Shown here: piece by piece, positions 7,603 to 58,900 of the stretch
How positions within the stretch are numbered: position 1 is the first letter of the stretch
Layout: each line of letters opens with the position of its first letter
From: Podarcis melisellensis
Lineage: Eukaryota
Length of the DNA: 64,000 nt
Direction: 5' to 3' (one strand)
Assembly (NCBI GenBank): GCA_964234715.1
Contig: OZ174288.1
Notes under the pieces: generated by a model
Database searches by the model: none
Told to the model about the DNA's origin: nothing
The model's input: only the letters and a program-made list of their open reading frames with translations
Position numbers and translations under genes: made by a program

Positions 7603-8152
7603 TGTTGTTGTTGTTTAGTCATTTAGTCGTGTCCGACTCTTTGTGACCCCATGGACCAGAGCATGCCAGACACTCCTGTCTTCCACTGCCTCCTGCAGTT
7701 TAGTCAAACTCATGTTAGTCGCTTCGAGAACACTATCCAACCATCTCATCCTCTTTCATCCCCTTCTCCTTGTGCCCTCCATCTTTCCCAACATCAGGGT
7801 CTTTTCCAGGGAGTCTTCTCATGAGGTGGCCAAAGTATTGGAGCCTCAGCTTCAGGATCTGTCCTTCCAGTGAGCACTCAGGGCTGATTTCCTTCAGAAT
7901 GGAGAGGTTGGATCTTCTTGCAGTCCATGGGACTCTCAAGAGTCTCCTCCAGCACCAGAATTCAAAAGCATCAATTCTTCAGCGATCAGCCTTCTTTATG
8001 GTCCAGCTCTCACTTCCATACATCACTACTGGGAAAACCATAGCTTTAACTATATGGACCTTTGTTGGCAAGGTGATGTCTCTGCCTTTTAAGATGCTGT
8101 CTAGGTTTGTCATTGCTTTTCTCCCAAGAATCAGGCGTCTTTTAATTTCATG
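7603..8152 (-). mobile_element. BovB (RTE) LINE, 5'-truncated
   Basis: RVPWTARRSNLSILKEISPECSLEGQILKLRLQYFGHLMRR; 3' end GGGGTCACAAAGAGTCGGACACGACT with a (CAA)n tail. Confidence 0.92.
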
Positions 8153-8329
8153 TTATCGTGTTGTTGGGGAAGGCTTTGGTAATTGCAGCCATATTTCGAT
8201 GGGGTAGGTTCTGATCATTATTGCTGGCCACTTTGTATGTGTTTGTTGCAGATTATTTTGAATTTTGTTTAAAGAATTTTTAAAGAAAATTGTTATTACC
8301 CACTCTGGTATCTCAAAATTGACAAGGAG

Positions 8330-8735
8330 TGGAATATAAATCCAATGAAAAAAAAACGATAAAAAATAACCTCTGAGCAGACATATCAAGAGGAATGCTG
8401 AACAAACAGTTGTTGCCATATAACCTCTGCAGTTTCGGGCAAATAATATGAGCATGAATATGGTTGCCTGACTTTTGTGGAACAGCATCCCTGTAGAGAT
8501 ATGACAGACTCCCACTATCTGCACTTTCCAGTAACACTTAAAGACATATTTGTTTTGGAAAGCTTTTCCAGTTCAATGAAAAACTCTCTGCCTTAGGTGT
8601 CCATTCTGTATTGTTTTTAAACTCATTTTGTGTTGTAGTTCGTACTGCTTTAACAACTATTTTTAGCTGCTTTTATGGCATGCTTATAAATGGCCTTGAG
8701 ATGCATGCAAATGGTGATCCATGCCTTAAATAAAT
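8330..8735 (+). mobile_element. L2 LINE 3' fragment (old)
   Basis: TGGAACAGCATCCCTGTAGAGAT...CACTTAAAGACATATTTGTTT motif ending in TAAATAAATAAA. Confidence 0.55.
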
Positions 8736-8989
8736 AAAATGAATGAACACTCAATGAAGAGCAAGCCTGCTGTTTTTCCTAGGTTTATTTTCTCACCACA
8801 ATGAAGAAGCGACCACACTTCAACTGAAGAAAAACTGGCATACATTTGTGATATAAATATGCCCCCAAGACATTCCATTGATAGGTAGCCAGGTACACAT
8901 TTTCTTCTTTTCCTACTTGTGATTTCTAGAACAGTGTTTCCCAACCGGTGTTCCGCGGCACACTAGTGTGCCGCGAGACGTTGCCTGGT

Positions 8990-9810
8990 GTGCCGTGGGA
9001 GGGAGGCGGGCGAGTCGGGCGGCGAGATGCGGGGCGGCGGCGGCATCTCCTGCTGGATGCAAATCCAAACATGGCGGGCGCCTCCCTCGCTCCTTTGTAG
9101 GCGGACCATCGAGAGAGAAAGAAAAGGAGGCGAAAGAGCGAGAGAAGGCGCCTGCGCGGAAAGAGGAGCGAGCAGTGCGCCTGCGCACCGCAGCGCCCGA
9201 GTGCAGTGAAATTCCGTGAAGAGGGGAGGGGGGCTGGAAAAGAGAGAAAGGAAAGATTTTTCATTTTTTTTAAAAAAAAAAAAAAAGGAAGAGGGAAAGA
9301 AGAGAAAAAGCGGCAGAAGCTGAGGGGAAGGTTTCCGTGAGGGAGAGAGAGAGAGAAACGCGGGGCTGGCGGGACCCCTCCTCTTCCGCCACGCGTCGCC
9401 CGCCACCACCTCAGAATCTCCTCAGGAGCGGCGGCGGCTGCTCCCCCTCACCCCCTTCCTCCCCCCAGCCCCCTCCCAACCCCCGGACGAGGGATGCGAG
9501 GCGGCACCGCTGAGAGGACGGGAAGGCCCCCGGCGGCGGGGTCGGCTCGAGCAAGGAGGGGCGAGCGCTAGCCGGCTGGCTCTAGCCCGGCAAGAGGAGG
9601 AGGAGGAGCACGCCGTCGCTTCGACAGCGGCCGCCCCACACTCCCCTCCCCGGGCACTGGCGGGGAGAATGACGGAGCTCCAGTCCGCGCTGCTACTGCG
9701 GAGACAGCTGGCAGGTCGGTCCGTCCGTCCATCGGGGCAAAACACACCACAGCGCAGGCAGAGGCAGGCAGGCCCGTCTCTCCCTGCCCCCCCCTCGGAC
9801 CTGGCCGGCC
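8990..9810 (+). promoter_or_regulatory. CpG island / housekeeping-type promoter sequence inside the hAT element
   Basis: Very GC- and CpG-rich relative to the AT-rich flanks. YY1-like AACATGGCGG at 9068-9077. NRF1-like TGCGCCTGCGCA at 9176-9187 and GCGCCTGCGCG at 9148-9158. GC boxes. Activity not shown. Confidence 0.65.
9669..9714 (+). pseudogene. UBE2G1: Captured copy of UBE2G1 coding exon 1 (46 nt) with GC-rich 5'UTR upstream and splice donor/intron start downstream
   Basis: ATG ACG GAG CTC CAG TCC GCG CTG CTA CTG CGG AGA CAG CTG GCA G|GTCGGT encodes MTELQSALLLRRQLA, the N-terminus of UBE2G1. Similarity stops at a phase-1 GT donor. No exon 2 (ELNKNPVEGFSAG...) was seen in the window. Confidence 0.88.
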
Positions 9811-10026
9811 TGGGGTTTGCACCCCAAACATTCATGTCCACCCCAGCTACACAAGCCACACCTTGCTCTCAGTTCGATCTGTCAAATAACTCACCTATCA
9901 TTCACATAAAGAACCTAGTCTATCCTCAAACGTCAGAATGTACCTCCTCTCTAGCTTCCCCCACTTCATCTAGGCACTTTCAGCCCTTACTTAACCCACC
10001 CCAGCCTGCTTACTCTTCCTTCATTT

Positions 10027-10152
10027 GCTATAAAAACTAAATACAGAGAGAGACTGAGAGCTGTTGACGAAGAGCTACGTGTGTGTCTTTCTTCGATTCC
10101 AGCCAGAATATCAGCTTTGTGTTCAGCCAAACAGGCCCAGGTTGCGCACTGA
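10027..10152 (+). pseudogene. hAT transposase C-terminal remnant (41 codons + stop)
   Basis: [41 protein letters not shown], matching the IKTKYRxRL...LRVxLS...KQAQxxH ending typical of Charlie/Buster transposases. AATAAA at 10152-10157 and 10201-10206. Confidence 0.88.
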
Positions 10153-10423
10153 ATAAAGTATTTTATAATTTTACATATTTCTGTTTACTTACTATTTCAT
10201 AATAAAGTAATTATAAAATACTTTCTTTGTGTTTATTTGATTCCTATTAAAGAGAGTTACTTTATATATAGTCAATATAGGCACAGAGTTAATTTTTTAA
10301 ACATTTTCTAATGGTGGTGTGCCTCGAGATTTTTTTCATGAAACAAGTGTGCCTTTGCCCAAAAAAGGTTGGGAAACACTGTTCTAGAAGCATTAAGCTG
10401 CAGCTCTTGGAAAGGGGGGCGAG

Positions 10424-10863
10424 TCTTCTTTTTTCTTCTTTGGCAGTCAATCGTAGCTGAGTAAGATTGTCTTCCATAAACACAGTTTTAACAGTGAGTC
10501 CCTAAGTGACTGTGGATGCCAATTCTGGATCCACACGTCCTTCCACAGTGAGGACATTGGTTTCCAGGCGGGAGTTGATCACAGTGTGGATTTGCCAAGC
10601 ATGCCTTCCTCTTAGCACATTTTTCCCTTGTGTCCTGAGTTTAAGTGTCTTCAAAGCCCATGACACCTTTGGTAAAGACTGTTCTCCAACTGGCAAGCGT
10701 TTCCCAATTGTTGGTGTTTATATTACATTTTTTTTAGATTTGCCTTGAGACAGTCTTTAAATCTATTTTGTTGACCATCAGCATTGCGCTTTCCATTTTT
10801 AAGTTTGGAATAGAGTAGTTGCTTTGGAAGACGATCATCAGGCATTGGCACAACATGACCAGT
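10424..10863 (-). mobile_element. RTE-clade LINE 3' fragment
   Basis: GHVVPMPDDRLPKQLLYSKLKNGKRNADGQQNRFKDCLKANLKK, an RTE ORF C-terminus; (GAA)-rich tail. Confidence 0.85.
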
Positions 10864-13800
10864 TGTACAGGGACAGTCAGTGCAGAGCCAAGATAGCATT
10901 GTGGCCAGCACCAGCTCTCTGAACATCACCACAGTGGCATGAAGGGAGGCAGGGAAGGCCAAGAGATTATTTACTCTGATAGCACAAAAGGCCTGCCTGG
11001 CAGTGGTGTTGTGGACACTGGTTGTTGATTTAGCTTTTTTGATCTCTTGTCTTGCTGCTACTCAACAAAAGAAATGTCTCTGAAAGTACATAAAGAAAGG
11101 CAGGAAAGGCAGAGAGGTGAATGATCATCAAGAGAGATCTATAGAAAAACTATAAGAGAAGAGGTCATGGCCTGTAGTACTGATATACTTTTTCGCTCCT
11201 TGAAATGTACTAAACTATGTGCTTTTCACTTTAATTACTAAGATCACTGTTAGATATGTGTCCCAAAAGGATCCTTTCTGAACATCCTACTCACACACTG
11301 TGGGATATATCTGCCTCATACAACCAACATGCTCAACTCTAAAAAAAATGCATGAATCCTACCAGGATTAGCTAGGTTGCACCCCCTCACCATGGGAGGA
11401 AAGGAACCAAACTCTTTGGTTTTTTACTTTCACCACATGAAGGAGGTCTAAGCTGGATGCCCCAAGCTTAGACAGTGTGGCTTAAGCAAACCAGATTTGT
11501 GTTTCTATACAAATAATTTAGAAACATTTACCTTTTGGGGAACCTAAGCCTGTTTTTTCCTACTGTTGCATAGAAAAAGCCATGAATCTGACCTTTGAAG
11601 AGATTGTAAGTAAGAAACTTAGGAAGAGATATTTTAAAGGTCTAGAAGCCTAGATTTCCATGCTTTACTTTGCTACATGTTTTGTGATTTTAAATCACTG
11701 CTGGGGCTCTCTCACCAAAGAGTTCTTGCCCCAAACCAGGATCTTAGATAGCCAATGAATTCTCTTTTTTAAAATTTTACCATAGCTAGGTGTTTTTTCT
11801 TTCATTTTAACCAAATTAAAACCAACACACACAGGACTTCTAGGTCGGTGAGCATATGTGTAACATAGGCCCTTTGCATGTTGGAATAGTTATGGCACAT
11901 CAACATCCATTGCTGGCAACAAGATAAACTTTTATGTCTACATCCAGGGTGGAAATGAGGCAGGTAATGAAGCATTAACAGCCACCCAGCAGTGGAAAGC
12001 ATATTTGAAGAGGCCATAACAAATTGAGAAGATTTAGGAGGCAGGGTTTGTAAGACTTACTCAAATTAAACCCTAACAATGGGAGGGAAGCTTCATTGTG
12101 TTGGCTTTTATATCTCTAGCTGCGTAGCTCAAGAAGGCAACCTATACAGATCTGAGAGTTTAAATGTATGTATGGATAAATACTGACATTCTAAAAATAA
12201 ACCTTGCATATTTAAAAGCTTCATTTTCTTTTCTCCCCCCACCATAAGCAGCAGTATTATTCAGAAAATGCACCATTGGCTTGGCAATCTCAGAATTTAT
12301 TGTTCATTAAAAATACATGCTAATTATCACAATTTTAATTAAAGTATTATCTGGTATATGTGAAATGCAATTATGTGCAACTGGCATAAGCTGTAAGGCA
12401 GGCTAATATTTGCAGAGAAGTGCAGCACTGGTATTGGTTCAGCACACGTACAATAAAGTGGTGTTTGTTTTCAAGTGAAAAATGGATAGATAGAACATTA
12501 AGCTGAGCCATTGCATAATCAAAGCAAAAACTGCAAGCCCTAGCAGGTGATTTTCAAAGTTTTATTTATTTATTTATTTGCCTCCTTTCCTATCCATATG
12601 AAGGTAACCGACTATAGCTATGATGTTCTAAGTGTTCCATTGCAGTCTTTGCCAATTTATCTTAGCAAGAAAGGGCACAATATGTCTGACAACATTACAT
12701 GCATGAAAAGATGTTAATAAAGACTTCAACAGAACAATTACAAAGACATATGAGGTTAGGAATTTCCTTGTTTAGGCTCCCCACCGATGGATGAGGTCAA
12801 CAGCTTTGTATTAGTTCAGCTGTACCAACTCTTGTGAACACTCCTCACATATGCAATATTTTTTGTTTGTGATTATATAAATCTGCCGTGACAAAATTCC
12901 TGGGGTGGGAGAGCTGGGAAGCAGGGCTCATTTCACCAGAAATTCACCAGGCACCTCCTGCCCCTCAACTATGCCAGATGAACATTATAGGAGCAACTGT
13001 TTAGAAACTGGTGCCTGAGTTTTGGTTTTGGTTTTCACCTTCCTTCCCTGCCCCCTTTCCCTTGTGTGTTGCATCATTTTTTAGATTGTAAGCCTGGGGG
13101 CAGGGACTGTCTTGTTTTGAAGAAACTGAAGCTACTGAGCCTTCAGTGATAGAGCTGGATGGTATTTCTAGCATTTAAACACACAATAATACCTAGATTG
13201 TATATAATTCACCTGGGAAGATCTAGCCACCTGCATGTGACAGGCTGCTGATATTATTGCACAAGCAAGCTTAACACGACAACAGAATCTGAAAGTTTGA
13301 GGTGTTTCATCTGTGTATTGCAGGAATTATAGGACACCATAAGAGGGTGACACGTGTAAGAGGTATAAGACACTCCTGTTCTTGGCTGGAAGAGAAAGGA
13401 ATGCACTTTGATGGAAAGAACCTATAGTTAAATAGAAGCCTGGCACTTTCTAAAACATGTATTCCTGTCTACTATGATAAGCACCTGCAGTGTTTGTTTC
13501 CTCAGATTGACACTAGTACATACCTACAATCACCCAAGGGAAAAATTATATACTAATCTCTTTATGAGACAAGATAAAATTAAGATAATTTGCTCTTTCA
13601 AATCAAGGTTGTATTGGATTTTGCATGAGCAACTAGTCTCCTTGCAGCTTTGCTACTGCAGAGAAAGCATGGCTTCAAATGTACACCTACCATAAATCTG
13701 TAGTTTTATGTTAGGCATCCATACACTGCCTTATCATTTGATGCTCAGGGCAGCTTATGAAAAGCCACAAAAATATAAACAATAGCCACTTACAAAACAA

Positions 13801-22823: not shown

Positions 22824-23658
22824 CCAGAGACATATCATGATATAAGAGTGGAGAGATAAGGAGGGGGCGGTCATAGAGGGCTTAACGGCAAGAGACAAGG
22901 AGCTACAGTCAACTATTACACACACAATCCTCCTATAACATTCCTTGGACAGCTGGATGTATGTACATTGCTCTTCTGACATTGCTGATCCACTACATGC
23001 AAAAAGCCTTGATGATCCATTAATTGCTAACTAAATTACATAAGGGAAATGCTGGAGGACTAAAATATGTTTTAAAATACCCTAATTAACAGGAAGGGTA
23101 AAGCTCAAGTTAAAATCAGATTGGCATTTTAGATGTGTCAAAATTGAGAACACTGGTACACCTAGAGACAATGCTTAGGTAATCAGAGTGCAACTGTTTC
23201 ACTATGAATTGGTGAAGTGCTAATTAGACCAAAGGGAAAAAAAAACACTGTCATTGCAGGGTAAAAGAGTATAAAAGAAAACAAAAACTAATTGCCATTT
23301 CATTGTCAAAGAAAAGAGTATCAAGCACAGCAGCACAGTATGCAAAACCCCATTTTATAAGTAAATACCGGAAATCATTGCTAGTCAGATAATAGTGTGC
23401 TTTCCTAAAAGCATGCCAAGACAATGGTTAGAAAGAGCAAGGATCAGGCTGCTACAGGAGTAGGCCAAAATATTATCATCACAGAAATTATTCTGCTGAA
23501 GGGTTTTAGACCCAGTCCTAAAACACCCACATATCTCCACTATACAGATGCATTAGCTTGCTTTATTATCTCCAGAACTTAATCAGGGTGCTTAACGTGT
23601 AAGCAGCATTATCAAGTGCAATTAGTCATATTTCAAACAATAATTTACTTTAACTTAC

Positions 23659-23806
23659 ATTCTGCTGCTTGGTATAATCTTGTGCCCATCTCTAAACCAA
23701 GTCACTTGCGGTCTGGGGTAGCTTGTGATGTGTGGAAAGTTTAGGATTGTGGCTTGCCCTTCAGACACTGTTTTCCTCTGGTCCTCATCCTGGAAATTCC
23801 CCATGT
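23659..23806 (-). CDS. SDK1: Sidekick-1 coding exon 4 (148 bp; Ig domain 2)
   Basis: Read by hand as YMGNFQDEDQRKTVSEGQATILNFPHITSYPRPQVTWFRDGHKIIPSSRI. Acceptor ctctttgcag|AC, donor AT|gtaagt. In frame with exon 3. Confidence 0.95.
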
Positions 23807-26720: not shown

Positions 26721-27239
26721 GAGGGAAAACAGATTACCAGCAAGACTATTATTATGTTCTTATGTTTAAATGCCTGGAGGGAAGCCTGGGTCATTTCTGG
26801 CTGCCCCACTGGGGCTGCTGGTGTGGGTGCACAGTGGTGTCCTTTTGTGCTTTGCCTGCTGTGGTGCAGGAGGTGTACTGGGGAGAGAGCATCTCCATTA
26901 TATATTCATTGACTCTATCTGTGTGGGTGGCCTGTGGATGTCCCTCCCAGTACAGAGACTGGCTGGTGGGCTGTGGCGGTATTGCCAGGAGAGCTGCCAT
27001 TTTTCTCCTGTCTTTATATTTTTTGCTGTGTGAAGTTTTTTCCTCCCCTCCACACTGAGCACTCACTGGATATGGCAGGGATTCGCTTGGAACAGCGGCA
27101 GTGTCTCTCCAGTCCTGGTGTAATGCGAGTTTTCTCTGTCAATTCCCTTATCAGAGGATTTAGCACAACTAGTGCCTACACTCGAAACTGGTTTCCTCTA
27201 TCATACCCTATGAGAATAATTATATTCTAGGATGATATA

Positions 27240-27481
27240 CAGTGGTACCTCAGGTTAAGAACTCAATTTGTTCTGGAGGTCCATTCTTAACCTGAAACTG
27301 TTCTTAACCTGAGGTACCACTTTAGCTAATGGGGTCTCCTGCTGCCATCGCGCCGCTACCGCGTGATTTCTGTTGTCATCCTGAAGCAAAGTTCTTAACC
27401 CAAGGTACTATTTCTGGGTTAGCAGAGTCTGTAACCTGAAGTGTCTGTAACCTGAAGCATCTGTAACCCGAGGTACCACTG
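27240..27481. mobile_element. Tc1/mariner-type MITE
   Basis: TIRs CAGTGGTACCTCAGGTTA / TAACCCGAGGTACCACTG with TA on both sides. Confidence 0.92.
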
Positions 27482-27483
27482 TA

Positions 27484-31024: not shown

Positions 31025-31131
31025 ATGCCACTTGAACTTCTGATTTTCTTTGCAGGAGTGCCCCCATTCTGTTCCTCACAACACACTGATAAAAACCAGC
31101 ATCAGATCTTTGCAAGGATGGGATAACGTAC
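31025..31131 (-). CDS. SDK1: Sidekick-1 coding exon 3 (107 bp)
   Basis: Not in the ORF track; read by hand as (T)[35 protein letters not shown]. Acceptor gtcttacag|G, donor T|gtatgt. Phases 2/1 fit exons 2 and 4. Confidence 0.95.
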
Positions 31132-32754
31132 CTGTAAGACAGAAAGGGATATCACAATTAAAACATGTACTTGGACTTTGATATCTGTTCTCAAAAACAG
31201 GTTGAGCCCCAGGCAGCAGGAACCACAGGGGCAACAGATCCCAGTGTAGCTCTTTATTTGCCTCCCTTGTTCCTGATGTAGATCTTCACTCACTCTGTCC
31301 ATGATTTATCAGTCCTCAATTCTTCCCCCCCCCCTTTTTTGCATGATTCTACAACATGCTGTACGAAAAAGTATATGTGAAAATCTGAGATGAATTACAT
31401 CACACTTCCTCTTAAAGAACCATTAATAAATAGATTGAATTCCATACTAGCGTTATAGAGACATATCTGAGCATCCTCTAGCACTCAAATATTCCTCCAT
31501 CTTCAAGGCAGGAAAGCAAATTTCTTGTCCAGTTATGACAAGAAGCCAAACAGAAATCTAAGTGATGATATTGGGGAAGATGTTCAGCAACATAAAACCC
31601 CCACTTTTGAAGTCTCTTTTTAAAAAAGTGTATAGCACAATCAACTGAACTGAAAGTACTGAAAAAAGATAACGGATGATTAAGAAAAAATGATCACAAT
31701 GAGTCCTGCCTTCCTTTTCTCAGTAGGCTTCCACAAACACACATCCTGCCAGTTCTGCTTTCCTCTACCCCATCTGCATTTCATCCTTTCTGTAAGACGC
31801 AGAGAGCTGAAGGCAGTTCTCTAGAGCCATCATTGCCAGGACAGGTATTTAATTTTTTGCATCTTGCCATGATTTCTGGTTAAACCAATTTTCATGGTTT
31901 CTTATGACACTTCAATCTGTACCCTGCAAAACTCAAAATCAGAAGAGCACATAAATCTACTATAGCAGTGCATTTCAGTGAGATTGTCACAAGCCCAGAT
32001 GATGAGTAACAAGCCCAAAGCAATCAAATATTATATAATGGTGGTTCCTCTGCAAGCACCCCTTTTTAGCTTGAACTCTTTTTTTCTTTTTTTCTTTTTT
32101 GGAAGCCCGCATCCTGATTATTGTAATATTACACTCAGTTAATTGAGAAAATACATAATGACAAAAATCTATTACAAACTCGGTAATGTTTTAAATTAAT
32201 TTGCAAATGCGCCAAAATAAAATAATGCAGCAAAAATTCATTTCTTTATTTCCCCAAAGTATTCACCAATGAACAACTCAATTAATTAATTCAAAAGTTA
32301 TGAAAGTTAATACATTTACATTTATAAATAAATATATTTATTTATTTATGTAAATTTATTTATCTTTTATGAATTTATTTCTTTCCCTAATACAGACAAT
32401 ACAGAGCTAGTTGCACCAATGGTCTGACTCTGTATAAGGCAGATTCCTCAGTTTATACATTATGTTTTAGAGTATATCTCTATAGTCTTTTAAAAGTATT
32501 CAAATAAGTTCTTATACATTCTCAGTAACCCTAACAACAACTAAGTTTAGATGTAGCAATAGTAGCAGCACCTAAGACTAAAACAGTTCACCCAATACAC
32601 CTTAGTATTTGGCTCGTGAAAACATTTCCTGTTTTAATAAATCACATACATTCTGCTCCTGGAAAGCTCAAAGTGTCTTTCACAGAGATCTCAGGCAGAT
32701 CTTCCATTCAGACATTGGACATGCTGCGTGCTGCTTAGCTATAACAACAGGCGG

Positions 32755-41221: not shown

Positions 41222-41860
41222 ATAAGAACATAAGAAGGGTATGCAGGATCAGGCCCATCTAATCTAGCTTCCTGTTCTCATAGTGGCTCACAGACACCTG
41301 CAGGATTCAATGTCAATGGCACTCTCCCTTCTGCGGTTTCCGGCAGTTGGTATTCAGAAGCATTACTGCCTTTGATCATGCAGATGGAGCAAAATCATCC
41401 TGGTTAAAAGCCATTGTTAGCCTTATTCTCCATGAATTCATCTAATCCTCTTTTAAAGCCATCTAAGTTGGTGACCGGGATGCAGGTGGCGCTGTGGGTT
41501 AAAGCCTCAGCGCCTAGGACTTGCCGATTGAAAGGTCGGCGGTTCAAATCCCTGCGGCGGGGTGCGCTCCCGCTGCTCGGTCCCAGTGCCTGCCAACCTA
41601 GCAGTTCGAAAGCACCTCCGGGTGCAAGTAGATAAATAGGGACCGCTTACCAGCGGGAAGGTAAACGGCGTTTCCGTGTGCGGCTCTGGCTCGCCAGATG
41701 CAGCTTTGTCATGCTGGCCACGTGACCCGGAAGTGTCTCCGGACAGCGCTGGCCCCTGGCCTCTTGAGTGAGATGGGCGCACAACCCCAGAGTCTGGCAA
41801 GACTGGCCCGTACGGGCAGGGGTACCTTTACCTTTAAGTTGGTGACCATCACTACTTCAA
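41222..41860 (-). mobile_element. CR1-like LINE 3' fragment interrupted by a Sauria SINE
   Basis: ATAAGAACATAAGAA tail; the sequence CCATCTAAGTTGGTGACC|ATCACTAC resumes after the SINE. Confidence 0.65.
41477..41834 (+). mobile_element. Sauria SINE, full length, young
   Basis: 13-bp TSD TAAGTTGGTGACC at 41464-41476 and 41835-41847; CpGs retained. Confidence 0.95.
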
Positions 41861-42021
41861 CTAATAACAATAACAAAAAAAATATTATTTGTATCCCCCC
41901 CATCTGACTGGGTTGCCCCAACACTCTGGGCGGTTTCCAACAGCAGTGTACCTATTTACTACTGGCCAAGTTTTGAGAAATGATTTTTGTTGAAATTAAT
42001 TTAATCACAAAACAGTAAGTG

Positions 42022-42247
42022 TAGTGGTACCTCGGGTTAAGAACTTAATTTGTTCTGGAGGTCCGTTCTAAACCTGAAACTCTTCTTAACCTGAAGCACC
42101 ACTTTAGCTAATGGGGCCTCCCGCTGCCACCATGACACCACTGTGCAATTTCTGTTCTCAACCTGAAGCAAAGTTCTTAACCCGAGGTACTATTTCTGGG
42201 TTAGTGGAGTCTGTAACCTGAAGCGTCTGTAACCCGAGGTACCACTG
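42022..42247. mobile_element. Tc1/mariner-type MITE
   Basis: Same TIRs as the copy at 27240-27481. Confidence 0.9.
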
Positions 42248-43148
42248 TATTTCCTGCAGTGCCAGCCTGCCCATGAGGCAGGCTAAAGCAACTGAGGTTG
42301 CATGGCGGTGGCTTCTTCCAGTGAGATCTTGCAGAACTTGCATGAGATATCACAAGATATTGCCATAAACCATTGCAGCTACATGACCCCCGTAAGCAAG
42401 ACTTAGGTGAGAAGGACACCTTCCTGTTTCATCTCAGGTGGGGAAATGGGACGGGTGCCCCTGACCTCCATGCCCTTGTTGGCTTTGCTAGGTGTCTGGG
42501 ATGGACTGAATGAAGACTATTGCTTTAAAACTCTGGTCCAACAACCATTAGCTGCAGCACAAATGCTTACAGCTAAAGGTTGGAAATATTTGAAGAGAAT
42601 TAACAAAGAGGCCTGATACAGACATGCGTGTTCTTTACTGATAATGCAAAATATTGGGGCAATATTTTTTTTAAAAAAATTAATGTTTGGCAAAGTTTTA
42701 TTCAGCATATAAATAAACGATAGAAATAATATTCAGACCCTCCCACATAGATATGCCTGTATTTTGAATGTTTTTTTTTATGATATTGATTATTTTTGAT
42801 GGAGTAGATTCTGTATCATTTACATGTATCTGCCCAAGGATAGAGAAAATAATACTACTTTATAACATTTCACCACTCACCTCCTGCTCTGATAATTAAA
42901 GACAATAGCTGTTTCTTTTTCTTTTTTTCATATCCTATCCCATCCTTTCCCAGACTAGTAACCTTTTCTTATTCCTTTCTTCTAGGTATGTATGTATTTA
43001 TGAATCTCTCACTGCCCACTTATCTCAATATAAGGATGTATCTTTCTTTGTACTGAAAATTAAATCAAGATAAATTAATTTCTGAAAAATCTTCATCAGT
43101 GACCAAAATGTTGAAAAGATAATACGGGGTGGGGGGGTGGAGGATTAA

Positions 43149-47268: not shown

Positions 47269-47636
47269 AGGTAAAGGTAAAGGTACCCCTGCCCGTAAGG
47301 GCCAGTCGTGTCCGACTCTAGGGTTGTGCGCTCATCTCACTTAAGAGGCCGGTAGCCAGTGCTGTCCGAAGACACTTCCGGGTCACGTGGCCAGCGTGAC
47401 GAAGCTGCTCTGGCAAGCCAGCACCAGCGCAGCACATGGAAATGCTGTTTACCTTCCCGCTATAAAGCGGTACCTATTTATCTACTTGCTCTTAGGGGTG
47501 CTTTCGAACTGCTAGGTGGGCAGGAGCTGGGACCGAAAGACGGGAGCTCACCCCGCCATGGGGATTCGAACCACCGACCATACGATCAGCAAGTCCTAGG
47601 CACTGAGGTTTTACCCACAGCGCCACCCGCGTCCCC
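47269..47636 (-). mobile_element. Sauria SINE, full length
   Basis: 11-bp TSD GCCATGAACAT at 47258-47268 and 47637-47647. Confidence 0.93.
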
Positions 47637-52134: not shown

Positions 52135-52270
52135 CAGGCATAGGCAAACTTGACCCTCCAGATGTTTTGGGACTACAACTCCCATCATCCCTAGCTAACA
52201 GGACCAGTCGTCAGGGATGATGGCAATTGTCGTCCAAAAACATCTGGAGGGCTGAGTTTGCCTATGCCTG
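52135..52270. mobile_element. hAT MITE (136 bp, palindromic)
   Basis: TIRs CAGGCATAGGCAAACT / AGTTTGCCTATGCCTG; perfect TSD CCTTAGCA at 52127-52134 and 52271-52278. Confidence 0.93.
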
Positions 52271-53734
52271 CCTTAGCATAACCAAGAAACAGAACCCAGC
52301 ATGGATGAAAGAAAGCTTCATTCTCAAAAGCTAAAATTATCAGATGCAGGAAACAGATGTGTTGTGCGGATGCCCCAAGTCTTCTGCACGTGACACAAGC
52401 AAGCCCCATGGTGTGCATGCTGTATGGCCAGCACAAAACTTAGAGGGCTAGCCCCTTCATGGAAAATTTTCAGGAGAGTGCCCCCCACCCACTTGGCGAC
52501 CCTGGTTGGAGGAATATTGAGCACAGTGTTTGTGGTGTATGTGTGCAATTGTAGCATCAGTTTGTGTTTTTGCTTGATGTGCCCATATCATGCTCACCAC
52601 CTTAGCTCTTTTGAAAGGACCAGTTAAGGTACTGATTTTTTTTAGAAAATTGAAGTAGGCATAAGATGCGGTACAGAAAAGTTTATGTGAGAGAATGGAG
52701 AAATTAAATCCCAAATAGCATAATAGAACAGTTTTGAAATTCCAAGGCAATGTGGCCATATCACATGAAATGTCTGGTTCAGTCACAAAGATCAACAATT
52801 TTCAGTTATTAAAGGCAACATATATATCCCATTCCTTTCTGATATTATTCTGTTCAGGTTTGTCAGTCATTAAACTAGAAAAGGTCATCACCTTCATATT
52901 TAATGCCAAAAGTAGCTTTGCGCTGTTTCACATTTTATTTTGTATGCTGTTCCTTTCCTATTAATTTCTGATCCTTATTCGTGAACTAGAAACAGTTTGC
53001 AAATTGGGAAGGAAACTAGCCCTCTGCATTTTACGAAGAACTGATTCTCACTGTGAATTTTGCACTCCAACATGGATACTAGAGCTCTGCAACCAATTTG
53101 TCCAAATCCCAAACAGATTTGTTTACAATTTGTGCTGAATCCATATAGGCAGCTACAAATCACTTCAGAGCAGGTAGACCCAATAAATACATTTGTAGTG
53201 GGTTGTGCTGATCTAGAATGGAAAAAACCGTCTCTCTAAAGGCAGAGATACAGTCTGTAAAATGCTGCAAGTATTAATTACAGCTCCATATAATGAGAAT
53301 GCCAAGGGAAGGAGAGGGGAAGGAATGAGTTAGATGGATTTGGAGGCCAGGATAGGATAATATTTATTATATATCCTTCCTTTGACCATCCCTTTTGCAG
53401 CATAAAATGTGACAAGGGTGGGACAAGGGTGCTTAACCTTATTCATAATTATGCAGGACGGGATCTTCCCCTTTTTATCCCTCTAAACAAAACAATCACA
53501 AATAGCTTTATAATGTAAGCAGTACAATGCTGTTTACTTACATAAAGGTTCAGACTTGATTTCATCAGTAACTGGCAGTGAAAGACTAGGCAGGCAGAAT
53601 ATACTTCTAGATCACAAAATACATGGTTATGATTTTTTAAAAATGGAGTCTGTGCTCAGGAAAGCACAAAAAAAGCATCCTCTCTCTAGTTACATAGCAA
53701 AGAAAGAGACTGGGCTCTGAGCAGGGAGGAAGTA

Positions 53735-55954
53735 CAGTGGTACCTCAGGTTACAGATCATAGAATCATAGAATCATAGAGTTGGAAGAGACCACAAGGGC
53801 CATCGAGTCCAACCCCCTGCCAAGCAGGAAACACCATCAGAGCACTCCTGGCATATGGTTGTCAAGCCTCTGCTTAAAGACCTCCAAAGAAGGAGACTCC
53901 ACCACACTCCTTGGCAGCAAATTCCACTGTCGAACAGCTCTTACTGTCAGGAAGTTCTTCCTAATGTTTAGGTGGAATCTTCTTTCTTGTAGTTTGGATC
54001 CATTGCTCTGTGTCCGCTTCTCTGGAGCAGCAGAAAACAACCTTTCTCCCTCCTCTATGGGACATCATTTTATATATTTGAACATGGCTATCATATCACC
54101 CCTTAACCTCCTCTTCTCCAGGCTAAACATGCCCAGCTCCCTTAGCCGTTCCTCATAAGGCATCGTTTTCAGGCCTTTGACCATTTTGGTTGCCCTCCTC
54201 TGGACACGCTCCAGTTTGTCAGTGTCCTTCTTGAACTGTGGTGCCCAGAACTGGACACAGTACTCCAGGTGAGGTCTGACCAGAGCAGAATACAGTGGCA
54301 CTATTACTTCCCTTGATCTAGATGCTATACTCCTATTGATGCAGCCCAGAATTGCATTGGCTTTTTTAGCTGCCGCGTCACACTATTGGCTCATGTCAAG
54401 TTTGTGGTCAACCAAGACTCCTAGATCCTTTTCACATGTACTGCTCTCAAGCCAGGTGTCACCCATCTTGTATTTGTGCCTCTCATTTTTTTGCCCAAGT
54501 GTAATACTTTACATTTCTCCCTGTTAAAATTCATCTTGTTTGTTTTGGCCCAGTTCTCTAATCTGTCAAGGTTGTTTTGAAGTGTGATCCTGTCCTCTGG
54601 GGTTTTAGCCACCCCTCCCAGTTTGGTGTCATCTGCAAATTTGATCAGGATGCCTTTGAGTCCATCATCCAAGTCGTTGATAAAGATGTTGAATAAGACC
54701 GGACCCAAGACATAACCCTGTGGCACCCCACTAGTCACTCTTCTCCAGGATGAAGAGGAACCATTGATGAGCACCCTTTGGGTTCGGTCAGTCAGCCAGT
54801 TACAAATCCACTGAGTGGTAGCATAGTCAAGACCGCATTTTACCAGCTTCTTTACAAGAATATCATGGGGCACCTTGTCAAATGCCTTGCTGAAATCAAG
54901 GCTACATCCACTGCATTCCCTTCATCTACCAGGCTTGTAATTCTGTCAAAAAATGAGATCAGGTTAGTCTGACATGACTTATTTTTCAGAAATCCATGCT
55001 GACTATTGGTGATCACAGCATTCCTTTCTAGGTGCTCACAGACTGTTTGCTTAATGATCTGCTCCAGAATCTTCCCTGGTATTGATGTCAGACTGACTGG
55101 GCGGTAATTATTTGGGTCCTCTCTTTTCCCCTTTTTGAAAATAAGGACAACATTTGCCCTCCTCCAGTCTGCCGGGACTTCGCCTGTTCTCCAGGAATTC
55201 TCAAAGATGACTGCCAGTGGTTCTGAGATCACATCTGCCAGTTCTTTTAATACTCTTGGATGCAGTTCATCTGGCCCTGGAGACTTGAATACATCTAGAC
55301 TAGCCAAGTATTCTTGTACTATCTCCTTAGTTATTCTAGGCTGTGTTTCCTCTACTGAATCTTTTGCTCCAAATTCTTCAGGTCGGGCATTGTTTTCTTT
55401 ATCGGAGAAGACTGAGGCAAAGAAGGCATTGAGGAGTTCAGCCCTTTCTGTGTCCCCTGTTGGCATTTCACCATCTTCTCCTTTGAGTGACCCCACTGTT
55501 TCTTTATTCTTCCTTTTGCTACGAACATACCCATAAAAGCCTTTTTTGTTGCTTTTAACCTCTCTAGCAAGCCTGAGTTCATTCTGTGCTTTAGCTTTTC
55601 TGACTTTGTGTCTACACGTGCTGGCTATTTGTTTGAATTCCTCTTTGGTGGTTTGGTGGTTTCCCCCCTTTTCCATTTTTTGTACACATCCTTTTTTAAT
55701 CTTAACTCAGTTAAAAGTTCTTTAGATAGCCACCCCTTTAGATGCTTCAGGTTACATACGCTTCAGGTTACAGACTCCGCTAACCCAGAAATAGTACCTC
55801 GGGTTAAGAACTGTGCTTCAGGATGAGAACAGAAATCGTGAGCTGGTGGCAGTGGGAGGCCCCATTAGCTAAAGTGGTACCTCAGGTTAAGAACAGTTTC
55901 AAGTTAATTTGTTCTGGAGGTCCGTTCTTAAGTTCTTAACCCGAGGTACCACTG
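53735..55954. mobile_element. Tc1/mariner-type MITE split by a CR1 insertion
   Basis: Left TIR TA|CAGTGGTACCTCAGGTTACAGAT at 53735; remainder at 55740-55954 ending GAGGTACCACTG|TA. Confidence 0.9.
53758..55739 (-). mobile_element. CR1 LINE, 5'-truncated (about 2 kb), ORF2 with frameshifts and a stop
   Basis: KSPGPDELHPRVLKELA...NYRPVSLTSIPGKILE...SGVPQG...KFADDTKL...[13 protein letters not shown]; (ATTCTATG)n tail; possible 4-bp TSD AGAT. Confidence 0.96.
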
Positions 55955-58900
55955 TAGTAAGGATTATTTTCCTTTTGATTTTCCCACCAGGGCAAGCAGG
56001 GGATATGACTTCACAGAGTGCCCTCTCTAGGAATTTACAGGGGAACTCCATGTGCTTTTGCTTATCTAGCAAAACCTGACATTTCATTTTGGCTGCAATA
56101 TAATTTCCCATAGAATGGAACTGGGCTTTGCTTTTTGAGCACTCCTGTCCAGGGCTAGAATACCACCCAACTTTCTCCAATCACAGTGCCAGGTGGAGGG
56201 TGGGAGTGGTAAGGAATGGTGAAGTCTTCAACTGCAGCAAGCTTACTCTACCTTTTGTAAGTTCTGTCTCTTCTAATTTGGTGGCATTTTCTCATCTTGT
56301 GTTTTGTTTATTTGTTATCCAACCTTTCCCAATCAATCTCAGTTTCATCCTTATACAAAAAAGGTTTCTTCTCAGTATTAGTTACTTAGGCAATGTCACT
56401 TTCCTTATCCCCACCACCACCATTTTGTCACTGGTTTTTAAGGCTAGGCTTGCATTTTAGTTCTGTTTTATGTGTGTCTTTTCTAGTACTGTGTGTGTAG
56501 GTCTTATAAGTCAGTGCACAAGCAACACACATACAGTGTAATATTACATACATCATTGCAGTTCACTTAAGGTATATTAACCAATCCATTCTGAAGAACT
56601 CTTAAATGTTTGCCATCCATTAGGAGCTTTAAAGCTGGGAGTGTGTATGTGTGTGGAGAAGATGAAATACTTAATCAAAAGCAGAAGTGAAGAAGACAGA
56701 GAGACTGAAAATAAGGGAGAAGGAAAGGGATGACACAGGAAAATGGGATGAGATAAAGAATCAGAATGGAGGTAGAAAGTAAGAATGGAAACATGAAAAT
56801 TCAACATTTTCTTTTACCCTTGAACTAAAGTAGTAAAAGAATTATCTATTTGACAAATACAGTATAATACAATTCCTAGGCAGTCTATACTCCGTTTTAA
56901 TCAGCTTCAGGAATGTATAGCTCACATAAGCGTTATGGCTGTACAAAAATTAATTTTTTCGCATAGATTCATGTTAATGCTCTCTATTAAAGTTGAATAG
57001 ATGGAAGTGTTTGAAAGCTACTGCTTTAATCATTTGTACAATACACACTATTATACATTTGTCACAAATCTTTTTTGTCTGCATAATGGATCTTTGACTA
57101 GTGATTCCACATGAAGCATGAATATGGGCAAACTGAAAGGTAACTTCTACTTAAGTCATTCTTAAAAGCTTAGATATTTCGAAAGTTTCTTTTTGTTCAT
57201 TCAGTTAACAATTTCTATTAAACTTCTAACCAGACACAGAGACCTTTGCTTAGTCCAGAACATGCTACCCATAGCACAATATCAAACTATTCCACTCACC
57301 ACCATCCATATTTTATGCGTACTTTGTAACAGCCAGAGTGCATGTCCAAACTGAGCCAACATTTAATAAACTCTTAACATTGACTCCAGAGGAATTTCTG
57401 TGTCCTGTTGAGCCTACAGGAAGCAATCTTTTCTACTGCTCATTTTTTAAACTCTCTGCTGCATCTTACAAGAGCCTACAGTCATCTGTTTCTGTTGCAT
57501 GATACATCATTTGAATGACAATTCAGAAATTGTACCAGATGGATGTGTAACCCAAAACTACAAATAAGTTTCCTAAGAGAAAAAGCTATTAATAATCTAA
57601 GTCGCATACTTCAAAAACTGTGGAGGAGAATGGGTGCGTGTTACATTTTCAATTGCGCTATATCACAGCTTTTTGCAAATCTGAGGTCACTCATCACACT
57701 CCACCTGATCAGAAAGAGAAAGTTAGAGGCAGATTCTGAAATATAACCTAACAGTAGCTTCATTGCTGTCTCTCAACAAGTGTCACAAAACAGAAAACAA
57801 GATAATTCATTTCACCAGATTCTTATCACAGCCACATGTCTTATGTCACTACTACATCTACTCCCTCTGCCATTATTTCATGGAACAAACACAGCTGACA
57901 ATCAAAACAGCATAAAGTTTGGACATTAAGACCAATCAAATTCTAGCAATAGAATAAAATTCATTCCTTGGCTTAAGCAACAAATAGAAATGAGTTGCTT
58001 AAATCAGTAAGTTATCTGTGGACTCTGAATTTTGAGTGTCTAGCCAGATATTTGCTACTAAACGTCTTGAAAATCAATCTTACCTGCTTATGCCTTGTGT
58101 TACACACAGCAGAGACTTGCCTTGTGCCTGTGCACAGCACTAAGTAACACAATGTCTTATTAGTCTTGCCTCCTTATTGTCTGAAGGAACCTGAATATTT
58201 GTTTCAAGCTGGCATTTAGAATACCTTCCTAACAATTTTGAAAGGAAATAAGACTAGACCATACTTAATAAAAAATCTGGAAAGTAAAACTGCACTCACT
58301 ATGTTCACATAGCTGCTTCTCTAAACCTTATGTGGAAGAAAGCTTTAACTCACCACTTCTTTTTTCAAACTGAATTAGAGAGCATATTTTTCTTGAATTT
58401 CCTATTTTTTAATGCAAAACCTCAGGGAGCCTTAATTTTCTCCATCCAACTACCAAGGTTACTTTTTTTAAAAAGTCTTCTTTCTGTTCTATAGCTTTGC
58501 CAATGCGTATGCTAGAATTCATTTGTTCCAATACCTTAGACAAAGGATGTATGAGTTTAGGACATAGTCCCAATTAGTTTTATCATAGCTGCTTTGCCAG
58601 GAAAGGCAAGCATATATGTGCACATATCAAAACAGGTCTTAAATCAAAGTGCAAGCATATACTATTCCCCTTCTGTTCTGTAAATCAATCAAAGTGAATT
58701 TGGAAATGTGAGGTCTATTGAACTCCTGATAATCCAGATGGAGCTCAGAAGGCTGGTGCCTGCCAACAGCTCAGCTGCCCTCTCATTTTGGAACACCAAT
58801 CATCACCTGTTTCAGAAATGAATAAATAACCCGCAAACCTCTTCTCATTTCTCTTCGCTCTGTCTGACACAAGAAAGCCATGAACAGCTTTTCTTTCCTT

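Follow-up and report, generated by a model that had tools for sequence, protein, structure and literature searches.

The element described here lies in an intron of SDK1 within a window of 64 kb, by which we mean the whole stretch of DNA that was analyzed. It is very likely one of many copies of a non-autonomous hAT transposon in which some 1 kb of DNA from the UBE2G1 5' end has taken the place of the interior; this DNA would have been captured once, at the DNA level, and the chimera would later have spread by transposition. That the element belongs to the hAT superfamily and is non-autonomous is established by its 8-bp nTCTAGAn TSD, its CAG-type TIRs, its subterminal repeats, its transposase homology, and the existence of an empty site. 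Parts of the window are contained in public reads from twenty runs, nine studies, and five coded organisms, and we compared the contigs of four runs, X1 (organism A), X5 (organism B), X7 (organism D), and X15 (also organism D, and guessed to be RNA).

Boundaries and hAT affiliation of the element

As the initial annotation had claimed, a perfect TSD and perfect 15-bp TIRs bound a unit of 1450 bp (8932-10381). The 8-bp TSD TTCTAGAA is present in two identical copies, the right TIR is the perfect reverse complement of the left one, CAGTGTTTCCCAACC, and TIR and TSD together form a 23-nt inverted repeat with 100% complementarity (Table 1). When up to two mismatches were allowed, the TIR had only two matches in the 64-kb window, both of them at the termini of the element, against 0.19 expected by chance. 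The motif GTGTGCC or its complement occurs nine times in the window, and five of these occurrences fall in the transposon ends, namely in the left end and the terminal 65 bp of the right one, a clustering that would be expected of subterminal transposase-binding repeats. The left transposon end itself, previously put at about 70 bp, measures 69 bp.

The limits of the cargo were read from contigs of the family. Members without cargo continue with AAAATTAAAAAATTCG after 9000 and read CTCTGTGAGTTGTGCTTTTCAAGCATGA before 10025, and a unitig starts exactly at 10025 in both X7 and X15, which sets the right junction between 10024 and 10025 and gives the cargo the limits 9001-10024, or 1024 bp. In the frame of the transposase remnant, the sequence that precedes 10025 in members without cargo translates as LCELCFSSMI; an X15 contig runs through this reading into 10025 and thus gives that of the parent. 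LCELCFSSMI is a conserved hAT motif, which is also found in the protein P0004.

Downstream of the cargo, 41 codons (10027-10149) followed by a stop, together with the right end of the transposon, occupy 10025-10381, as had been described. No Pfam family was found for the 41-aa remnant alone, which was consequently placed via its full-length relatives. A HMMER search of 1.84 billion representatives returned 74 proteins, nearly all of them aligned at their extreme C terminus, and the longer ones carry the Pfam domains Dimer_Tnp_hAT (PF05699), DUF4371, and a Spin-doc-type zinc finger. The PF05699 scores of P0027 (22.9 bits) and P0068 (22.3 bits) lie above the Pfam cut-off of 21.4. In addition, L001, the contig encoding P0001, contains a relative of the right end that is 83-87% identical and has no cargo. 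The TSD, the TIR type, and the homology of the remnant to the C termini of hAT transposases thus all agree with the earlier assignment to hAT. With its interior lost except for the two ends and the last 41 codons, the element would need transposase supplied in trans by autonomous relatives.

Table 1. Positions of the element, its parts, and the neighboring SDK1 exons in the 64-kb window
Feature	Position	Strand	Evidence
Left TSD, TTCTAGAA	8924..8931	.	Sequence; in empty-site contigs, 8 letters fit both sides of the joint
Left TIR, CAGTGTTTCCCAACC	8932..8946	+	Inverted-repeat and TIR pattern search
Left hAT end, 69 bp	8932..9000	+	GTGTGCC/GGCACAC subterminal motifs at 8957, 8966, 8988
Cargo (captured host DNA), 1024 bp	9001..10024	+	Loose ends and unitig breaks at 9000, 10025
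CpG-island cargo upstream of ATG, presumed UBE2G1 promoter and 5'UTR	9001..9668	+	Origin inferred
Coding part of putative UBE2G1 exon 1 (ATG, 15 codons, first base of codon 16)	9669..9714	+	PDB 6d68_A, 15/15; X15 graph branch at donor
Intron-like non-coding cargo, about 310 bp	9715..10024	+	Sequence; contiguous with the exon in X1 contig 9624-10001
Last 41 codons of hAT transposase, and stop	10025..10152	+	Codons 10027-10149, stop 10150-10152; C-terminal homology
Right non-coding hAT end	10153..10381	+	GTGTGCC motifs at 10317, 10347; very high contig depth
Right TIR	10367..10381	-	Inverted-repeat and TIR pattern search
Right TSD, TTCTAGAA	10382..10389	.	Sequence and empty-site contigs
Next SDK1 exon, start of Ig2 (approximate limits)	23658..23804	-	PDB 5k6w_A residues 97-145, E 4e-23
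SDK1 exon, end of Ig1 (approximate limits)	31026..31139	-	PDB 5k6w_A residues 58-98, E 1e-18

The UBE2G1 cargo and its setting

The cargo carries the start codon, 15 codons, and the splice donor of UBE2G1, an assignment that the sequence supports. Positions 9669-9713 encode MTELQSALLLRRQLA, which begins with the ATG and is identical in 15 of 15 residues to human ubiquitin-conjugating enzyme E2 G1 (PDB 6d68_A), chain positions 2-16 corresponding to UBE2G1 residues 1-15. This match ranks first in the whole of the PDB, with an E value of 0.009, and the identity ends exactly at a G/GT donor (9714/9715), in line with the UBE2G1 N terminus and donor recognized in the initial annotation. The bases positively tied to UBE2G1 number only 46 of the 1024 bp of cargo, all of which presumably comes from one UBE2G1 locus. 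The description of the upstream part as CpG-island DNA is borne out by a GC content of 65% and an observed/expected CpG ratio of 0.88 over 9001-9714, compared with CpG ratios of 0.13-0.16 in the flanks; along the sequence, GC reaches 61-75% within 8900-9800 and is about 40% around it. Around 9110-9220, in the left part of the cargo, X1 and X7 show about double the depth of the right part, an excess that may reflect a mosaic cargo or truncated copies or subfamilies.

The donor is followed by non-coding sequence, an arrangement that fits capture at the DNA level and not retrotransposition, as had been claimed. Like processed retrocopies, the element duplicates part of a housekeeping gene at dispersed sites, but unlike them it keeps a CpG island, a donor, and intron-like DNA, has no terminal poly-A, and has TIRs and an 8-bp TSD at its borders. 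The 310 bp of non-coding DNA after the donor, the position of the only A-run (9270-9287) upstream of the ATG, and the TIR boundaries rule out a processed retrocopy.

UBE2G1 exons 2 and beyond, whose presence downstream had been named as the case against a captured fragment, left no trace: no UBC-core motif (HPN[IV], ELNKN) was found in any frame of the 64-kb window, and the UBE2G1 parent therefore lies elsewhere. Together with the SDK1 exons on the opposite strand, this rules out a UBE2G1 locus in place. The host gene had been correctly named, as two consecutive Ig-domain exons of SDK1 (sidekick-1) lie on the minus strand. The element is located about 13 kb beyond the exon that starts Ig2, within the following intron, and its UBE2G1 exon is on the plus strand. 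The cargo is consequently antisense to SDK1 and cannot feed SDK1 splicing.

The sequence indicates no protein product for the element. An exact look-up of nine of its ORFs in a protein collection found none of them, and no Pfam family was detected in the 123-aa read-through ORF, which is private to the SDK1-intron copy, the family having one C fewer at 9787. A chimeric UBE2G1-transposase peptide was considered and rejected: in the SDK1-intron copy, the frames of the ATG and of the remnant differ and the ORF stops at 10038-10040, and in the family form the two frames are the same, but three stop codons lie between the ATG and the remnant. A spliced chimera, from 9714 to the CAG at 10046, would read only three codons before a stop by hand reading and was likewise discarded.

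In the assembly of X15, the graph divides precisely at the predicted donor: a unitig terminates at 9714, and its successor begins at 9685. The depth is 204 before the branch and 153 on the unspliced path, leaving about 50 for another path, and in the DNA run X1 a single contig, 9624-10001, passes through the donor. The branch fits a spliced RNA form, the RNA nature of X15 being a guess. The copies may have promoter or splice-donor activity.

Empty sites, copy number, and alternative explanations

Contigs in X1, X5, and X7 join 8923 straight to 10382, skipping 1458 bases and retaining a single TTCTAGAA, the 8 letters of the joint being shared by both sides. The whole element, ends included, is thus absent from the site in three related genomes, which is the empty site with a single TTCTAGAA that the initial annotation had proposed to look for in relatives. 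The depth of each of these contigs equals the single-copy depth of its run (72.7 in X1, 9.64 in X5, and 15.1 in X7). The contigs extend past the joint by 30, 84, and 46 letters, respectively, so that X5 and X7 pass our rule of 31 letters and X1 is one short; in X1, 22 of the 30 letters distinguish the empty from the filled form. Over the left flank (8123-8923 at its widest), the differences from the window amount to 4 of 795 positions in X1, 24 of 800 in X5, and 32 of 773 in X7, the nearest genome with an empty site thus being only about 0.5% diverged. Because the clean site is identical in three organisms, the empty site is the ancestral state and not the product of excision. The insertion in the SDK1 intron is young, as had been suggested, and its presence or absence differs between close relatives.

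Nine substitutions separate the SDK1-intron copy from nearly all family contigs in all runs, and seven of them are CpG to TpG or CpA changes (9187, 9192, 9408, 9450, 9495, 9506, and 9658). About 8% of the CpGs have disappeared from the SDK1-intron copy or from its direct source, with few other changes, a pattern characteristic of germline methylation rather than of a protected CpG island. Contrary to the earlier statement, the CpGs are accordingly not intact: with at least seven private losses, their decay has begun.

Contigs of the cargo are far deeper than the single-copy DNA of the same runs. Their depth is 1016-2134 in X1 (about 14-29 times single copy, with contig 9624-10001 at 2134), 187-246 in X5 (about 19-25 times, with contig 9816-10014 at 246), and 487-1066 in X7 (about 32-70 times, with contig 9854-9989 at 1066), rough ratios that we read only as "tens of copies," contig depth not being the same as copy number. 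These high-depth contigs show 0-3 differences over 136-380 bases. The transposon ends reach thousands of times the single-copy value, about 9000 times for the left end, in summed contig depth, a measure that pools all contigs at 88% likeness or above. In X15, contigs 8981-9254 and 9685-10054 cross both cargo/transposon junctions at depths of 122 and 153, and the depth is zero on the unique flanks of the SDK1-intron site. Shorter derivatives of the family were also seen, in which 8995 or 8997 is joined to 10359, or 9000 to 10152. The contigs of the four runs did not directly show a second full copy flanked by a TSD of its own, and an exact-pattern scan of metagenome contigs for the cargo/transposon junction sequences gave no match. 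Taken together, the exact empty site in three genomes and the cargo depths support the multicopy mobile family that the initial annotation had guessed at, a recently mobile Pack-hAT with tens of copies by contig depth.

We propose the following course of events. An internally deleted hAT would have captured the UBE2G1 CpG island, the ATG, a first exon of 15 codons, and the donor with about 310 bp of the intron behind it, once and at the DNA level, presumably through gap repair or template switching. The chimera would then have spread by cut-and-paste transposition, mobilized in trans, and one copy would have landed on a TTCTAGAA target in the SDK1 intron, in antisense orientation, after the split from the three sampled relatives.

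Other explanations were weighed against this one. About 99% of animal Pack-TIRs are single-copy and arose by a transposition-independent route (PMC8277862), which speaks for a one-off capture in place, where a resident hAT relic was filled with UBE2G1 DNA by gap repair and the chimera never moved. We nevertheless regard this as extremely improbable, since the ends of a resident relic should still be in place, whereas the sites in X1, X5, and X7 hold a single TTCTAGAA and nothing of the element; the cargo contigs at tens of times the single-copy depth, and the presence in X15 of both junctions with zero depth on the flanks of the locus, argue in the same direction. The multicopy signal itself could stem from a segmental duplication that includes the 5' region of UBE2G1, or could arise because GC-rich contigs of low complexity match one another, with only the SDK1-intron copy residing inside a hAT. 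Parts of the cargo are indeed purine-rich and of low complexity, depth was summed over contigs at 88% likeness or above, and no DNA-run contig among the pieces listed crosses a junction. Such an origin of the signal is still very unlikely, in view of the high depth carried by single, nearly identical contigs, of the X15 contigs that span both junctions, and of the unitig start at 10025 in X7 and X15, which is expected where the paths of cargo and transposase merge. Moreover, the empty sites indicate that the SDK1-intron copy was itself delivered by transposition.

There is, finally, a small chance that the cargo is not UBE2G1 and that the 15-residue match arose by chance, or belongs to another gene, inside a GC-rich hAT filler. 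The match is short, was obtained against the PDB only, and has a modest E value; Pfam is blank on the 123-aa ORF, and a word-index protein search with the first 40 residues of the ORF gave 23 candidates, none at an E value of 10 or below. Against this stands the anatomy of the segment, which is that expected of a housekeeping first exon, with a CpG island upstream, full identity from the ATG, and an end at a GT donor, where the X15 graph also branches; furthermore, the best PDB match is to UBE2G1 from its first residue onward. The capture of the UBE2G1 5' end by a hAT that subsequently multiplied remains our preferred explanation.

Relation to known gene-capturing elements

In plants, the capture of gene fragments by cut-and-paste transposons is a major origin of new gene structures. 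Gene-fragment capture in animals is considered rare and its products mostly immobile (PMC8277862). Pack-TIRs in animals were defined by Tan et al. 2021, who counted 370 in 100 genomes, 208 of them hAT elements; only 4 of the 370 are multicopy, three in frog and one in alligator, with about 3-5 transposition events (PMC8277862). The multicopy Pack-TIRs tend towards GC-rich cargo, and template switching has been proposed for them (PMC8277862). The only lizard surveyed was anoCar2, with 0 hAT annotated and 0 Pack-TIRs (PMC8277862), and squamates are therefore effectively unsurveyed. Our literature search found no paper linking UBE2G1 with a hAT element.

The element described here contains what defines a Pack-TIR, host-derived DNA between TIR ends, in the form of the UBE2G1 start, 15 codons, and donor inside 9001-10024. 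Its kind is already known, and what is notable is the copy number, how complete a 5' gene module is carried, and the ongoing presence/absence variation. The published element hAT-N8_XT of Xenopus tropicalis carries a 291-bp piece of the CAPSL 5'UTR at three sites (PMC8277862). In both, GC-rich DNA from the 5' part of a host gene sits between the ends of a non-autonomous hAT, which is missing from orthologous sites of relatives; as in the frog, the UBE2G1 chimera would have moved to new sites with new TSDs. It differs in having a cargo of 1024 bp instead of 291 bp, in which a coding exon with its start codon and donor is included. Whereas the published multicopy Pack-TIRs record about 3-5 events, the depth of the UBE2G1 cargo contigs suggests that each of the three related organisms has tens of copies. 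The UBE2G1-cargo hAT would thus be an unusually successful animal example, with tens of copies of a complete housekeeping 5' module. It opens to test the origin of such chimeras, the fate of dispersed CpG-island promoters, which may be unmethylated or silenced, and the seeding of chimeric transcripts. It also calls for caution in annotation, since copies could be mistaken for UBE2G1 first exons or CpG-island promoters.

Among lizard transposons, hATs of Anolis carolinensis such as hAT-N3_AC and hAT-HT3_AC have TIRs CAGTGGTTCCCAACCT and CAGTGRTTCCCAAA and the target NTCTAGAN (Novick et al. 2010, PMC3014272). These TIRs and NTCTAGAN closely resemble CAGTGTTTCCCAACC and TTCTAGAA, a resemblance that does not imply family identity, and the 8-bp nTCTAGAn target and the CAGTG..TTCCCAACC terminus match several lizard hAT families in the same study (PMC3014272). 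Anolis hobo-type hATs are known to take up extraneous DNA (PMC3014272), but their filler is mostly other transposons, in contrast to the host promoter and first exon found in the UBE2G1 element.

The Pack-MULEs of rice and other plants resemble the UBE2G1 element in the DNA-level capture of GC-rich 5' gene ends followed by transpositional amplification (summarized in PMC8277862). They are nevertheless Mutator elements of plants with long TIRs and a TSD of 9-10 bp, whereas the UBE2G1 element is a hAT of an animal; its 15-bp CAG-type TIRs, 8-bp TSD, and hAT transposase remnant rule out membership of the Pack-MULE class. The cargo contigs of X15, the run guessed to be RNA, are 15-30 times richer relative to generic hAT ends than those of the DNA runs, a side observation that hints at a more far-reaching scenario. 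According to this tentative and rather doubtful view, this genome and its close relatives would host a hAT family that is still active, taking up CpG-island 5' ends of genes time and again and multiplying them to tens of copies, the UBE2G1 copies serving as dispersed cassettes of promoter, first exon, and donor that start new or chimeric transcripts. If this were true, the family would be an animal counterpart of the rice Pack-MULEs.

Repeats around the insertion

Very high-copy repeats lie on both sides of the hAT insertion, the second of them beginning ~43 bp from its landing site. In the public DNA run X1, the summed contig depth reached ~130,000x single copy over 8000-8110 and 14,000-44,000x over 10442-10885, and both flanking repeats are probably SINE-like elements.

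Inverted repeats elsewhere in the window

The 136-bp element, whose inverted arms begin CAGGCATAGGCAAACTTG, looks like a hAT-type MITE of another family. Several inverted-repeat pairs have the terminus TACAGTGGTACCTCAGGTTAAGAAC in common, one of them spanning 2.2 kb, and these pairs look like Tc1/mariner-type MITEs. The two long arms are either one repeat present twice, with its copies facing opposite ways, or the termini of a larger element.

Repeats and inverted-repeat features in the window
Feature	Position	Description
Flanking repeats	8000-8150; 10433-10885	very high copy
TACAGTGGTACCTCAGGTTAAGAAC pairs	27238-27483; 42013-42256; 53733-55956	inverted-repeat pairs; common terminus
Long arms	41497-41836; 47272-47616	~340 bp each; 82-90% complementary; 5.4 kb apart
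136-bp element	52135-52270	nearly all 58-nt inverted arms, 20 nt apart; 88% complementary
GCGCCTGCGC	9147-9186	two copies, 29 bp apart

Relatives and motifs of the hAT element

A sequence related to both the transposase remnant and the right end, with 83-87% identity, is found in an ENA metagenome contig (ERZ17094736; L001:587-1224), where two transposase pieces are spliced together in an 83-aa ORF; related decayed hATs are therefore present in another sampled organism. Within the CpG island of the captured cargo, a repeat search detected GCGCCTGCGC twice, a sequence that may be similar to the palindromic GC-rich sites bound by housekeeping-promoter factors.
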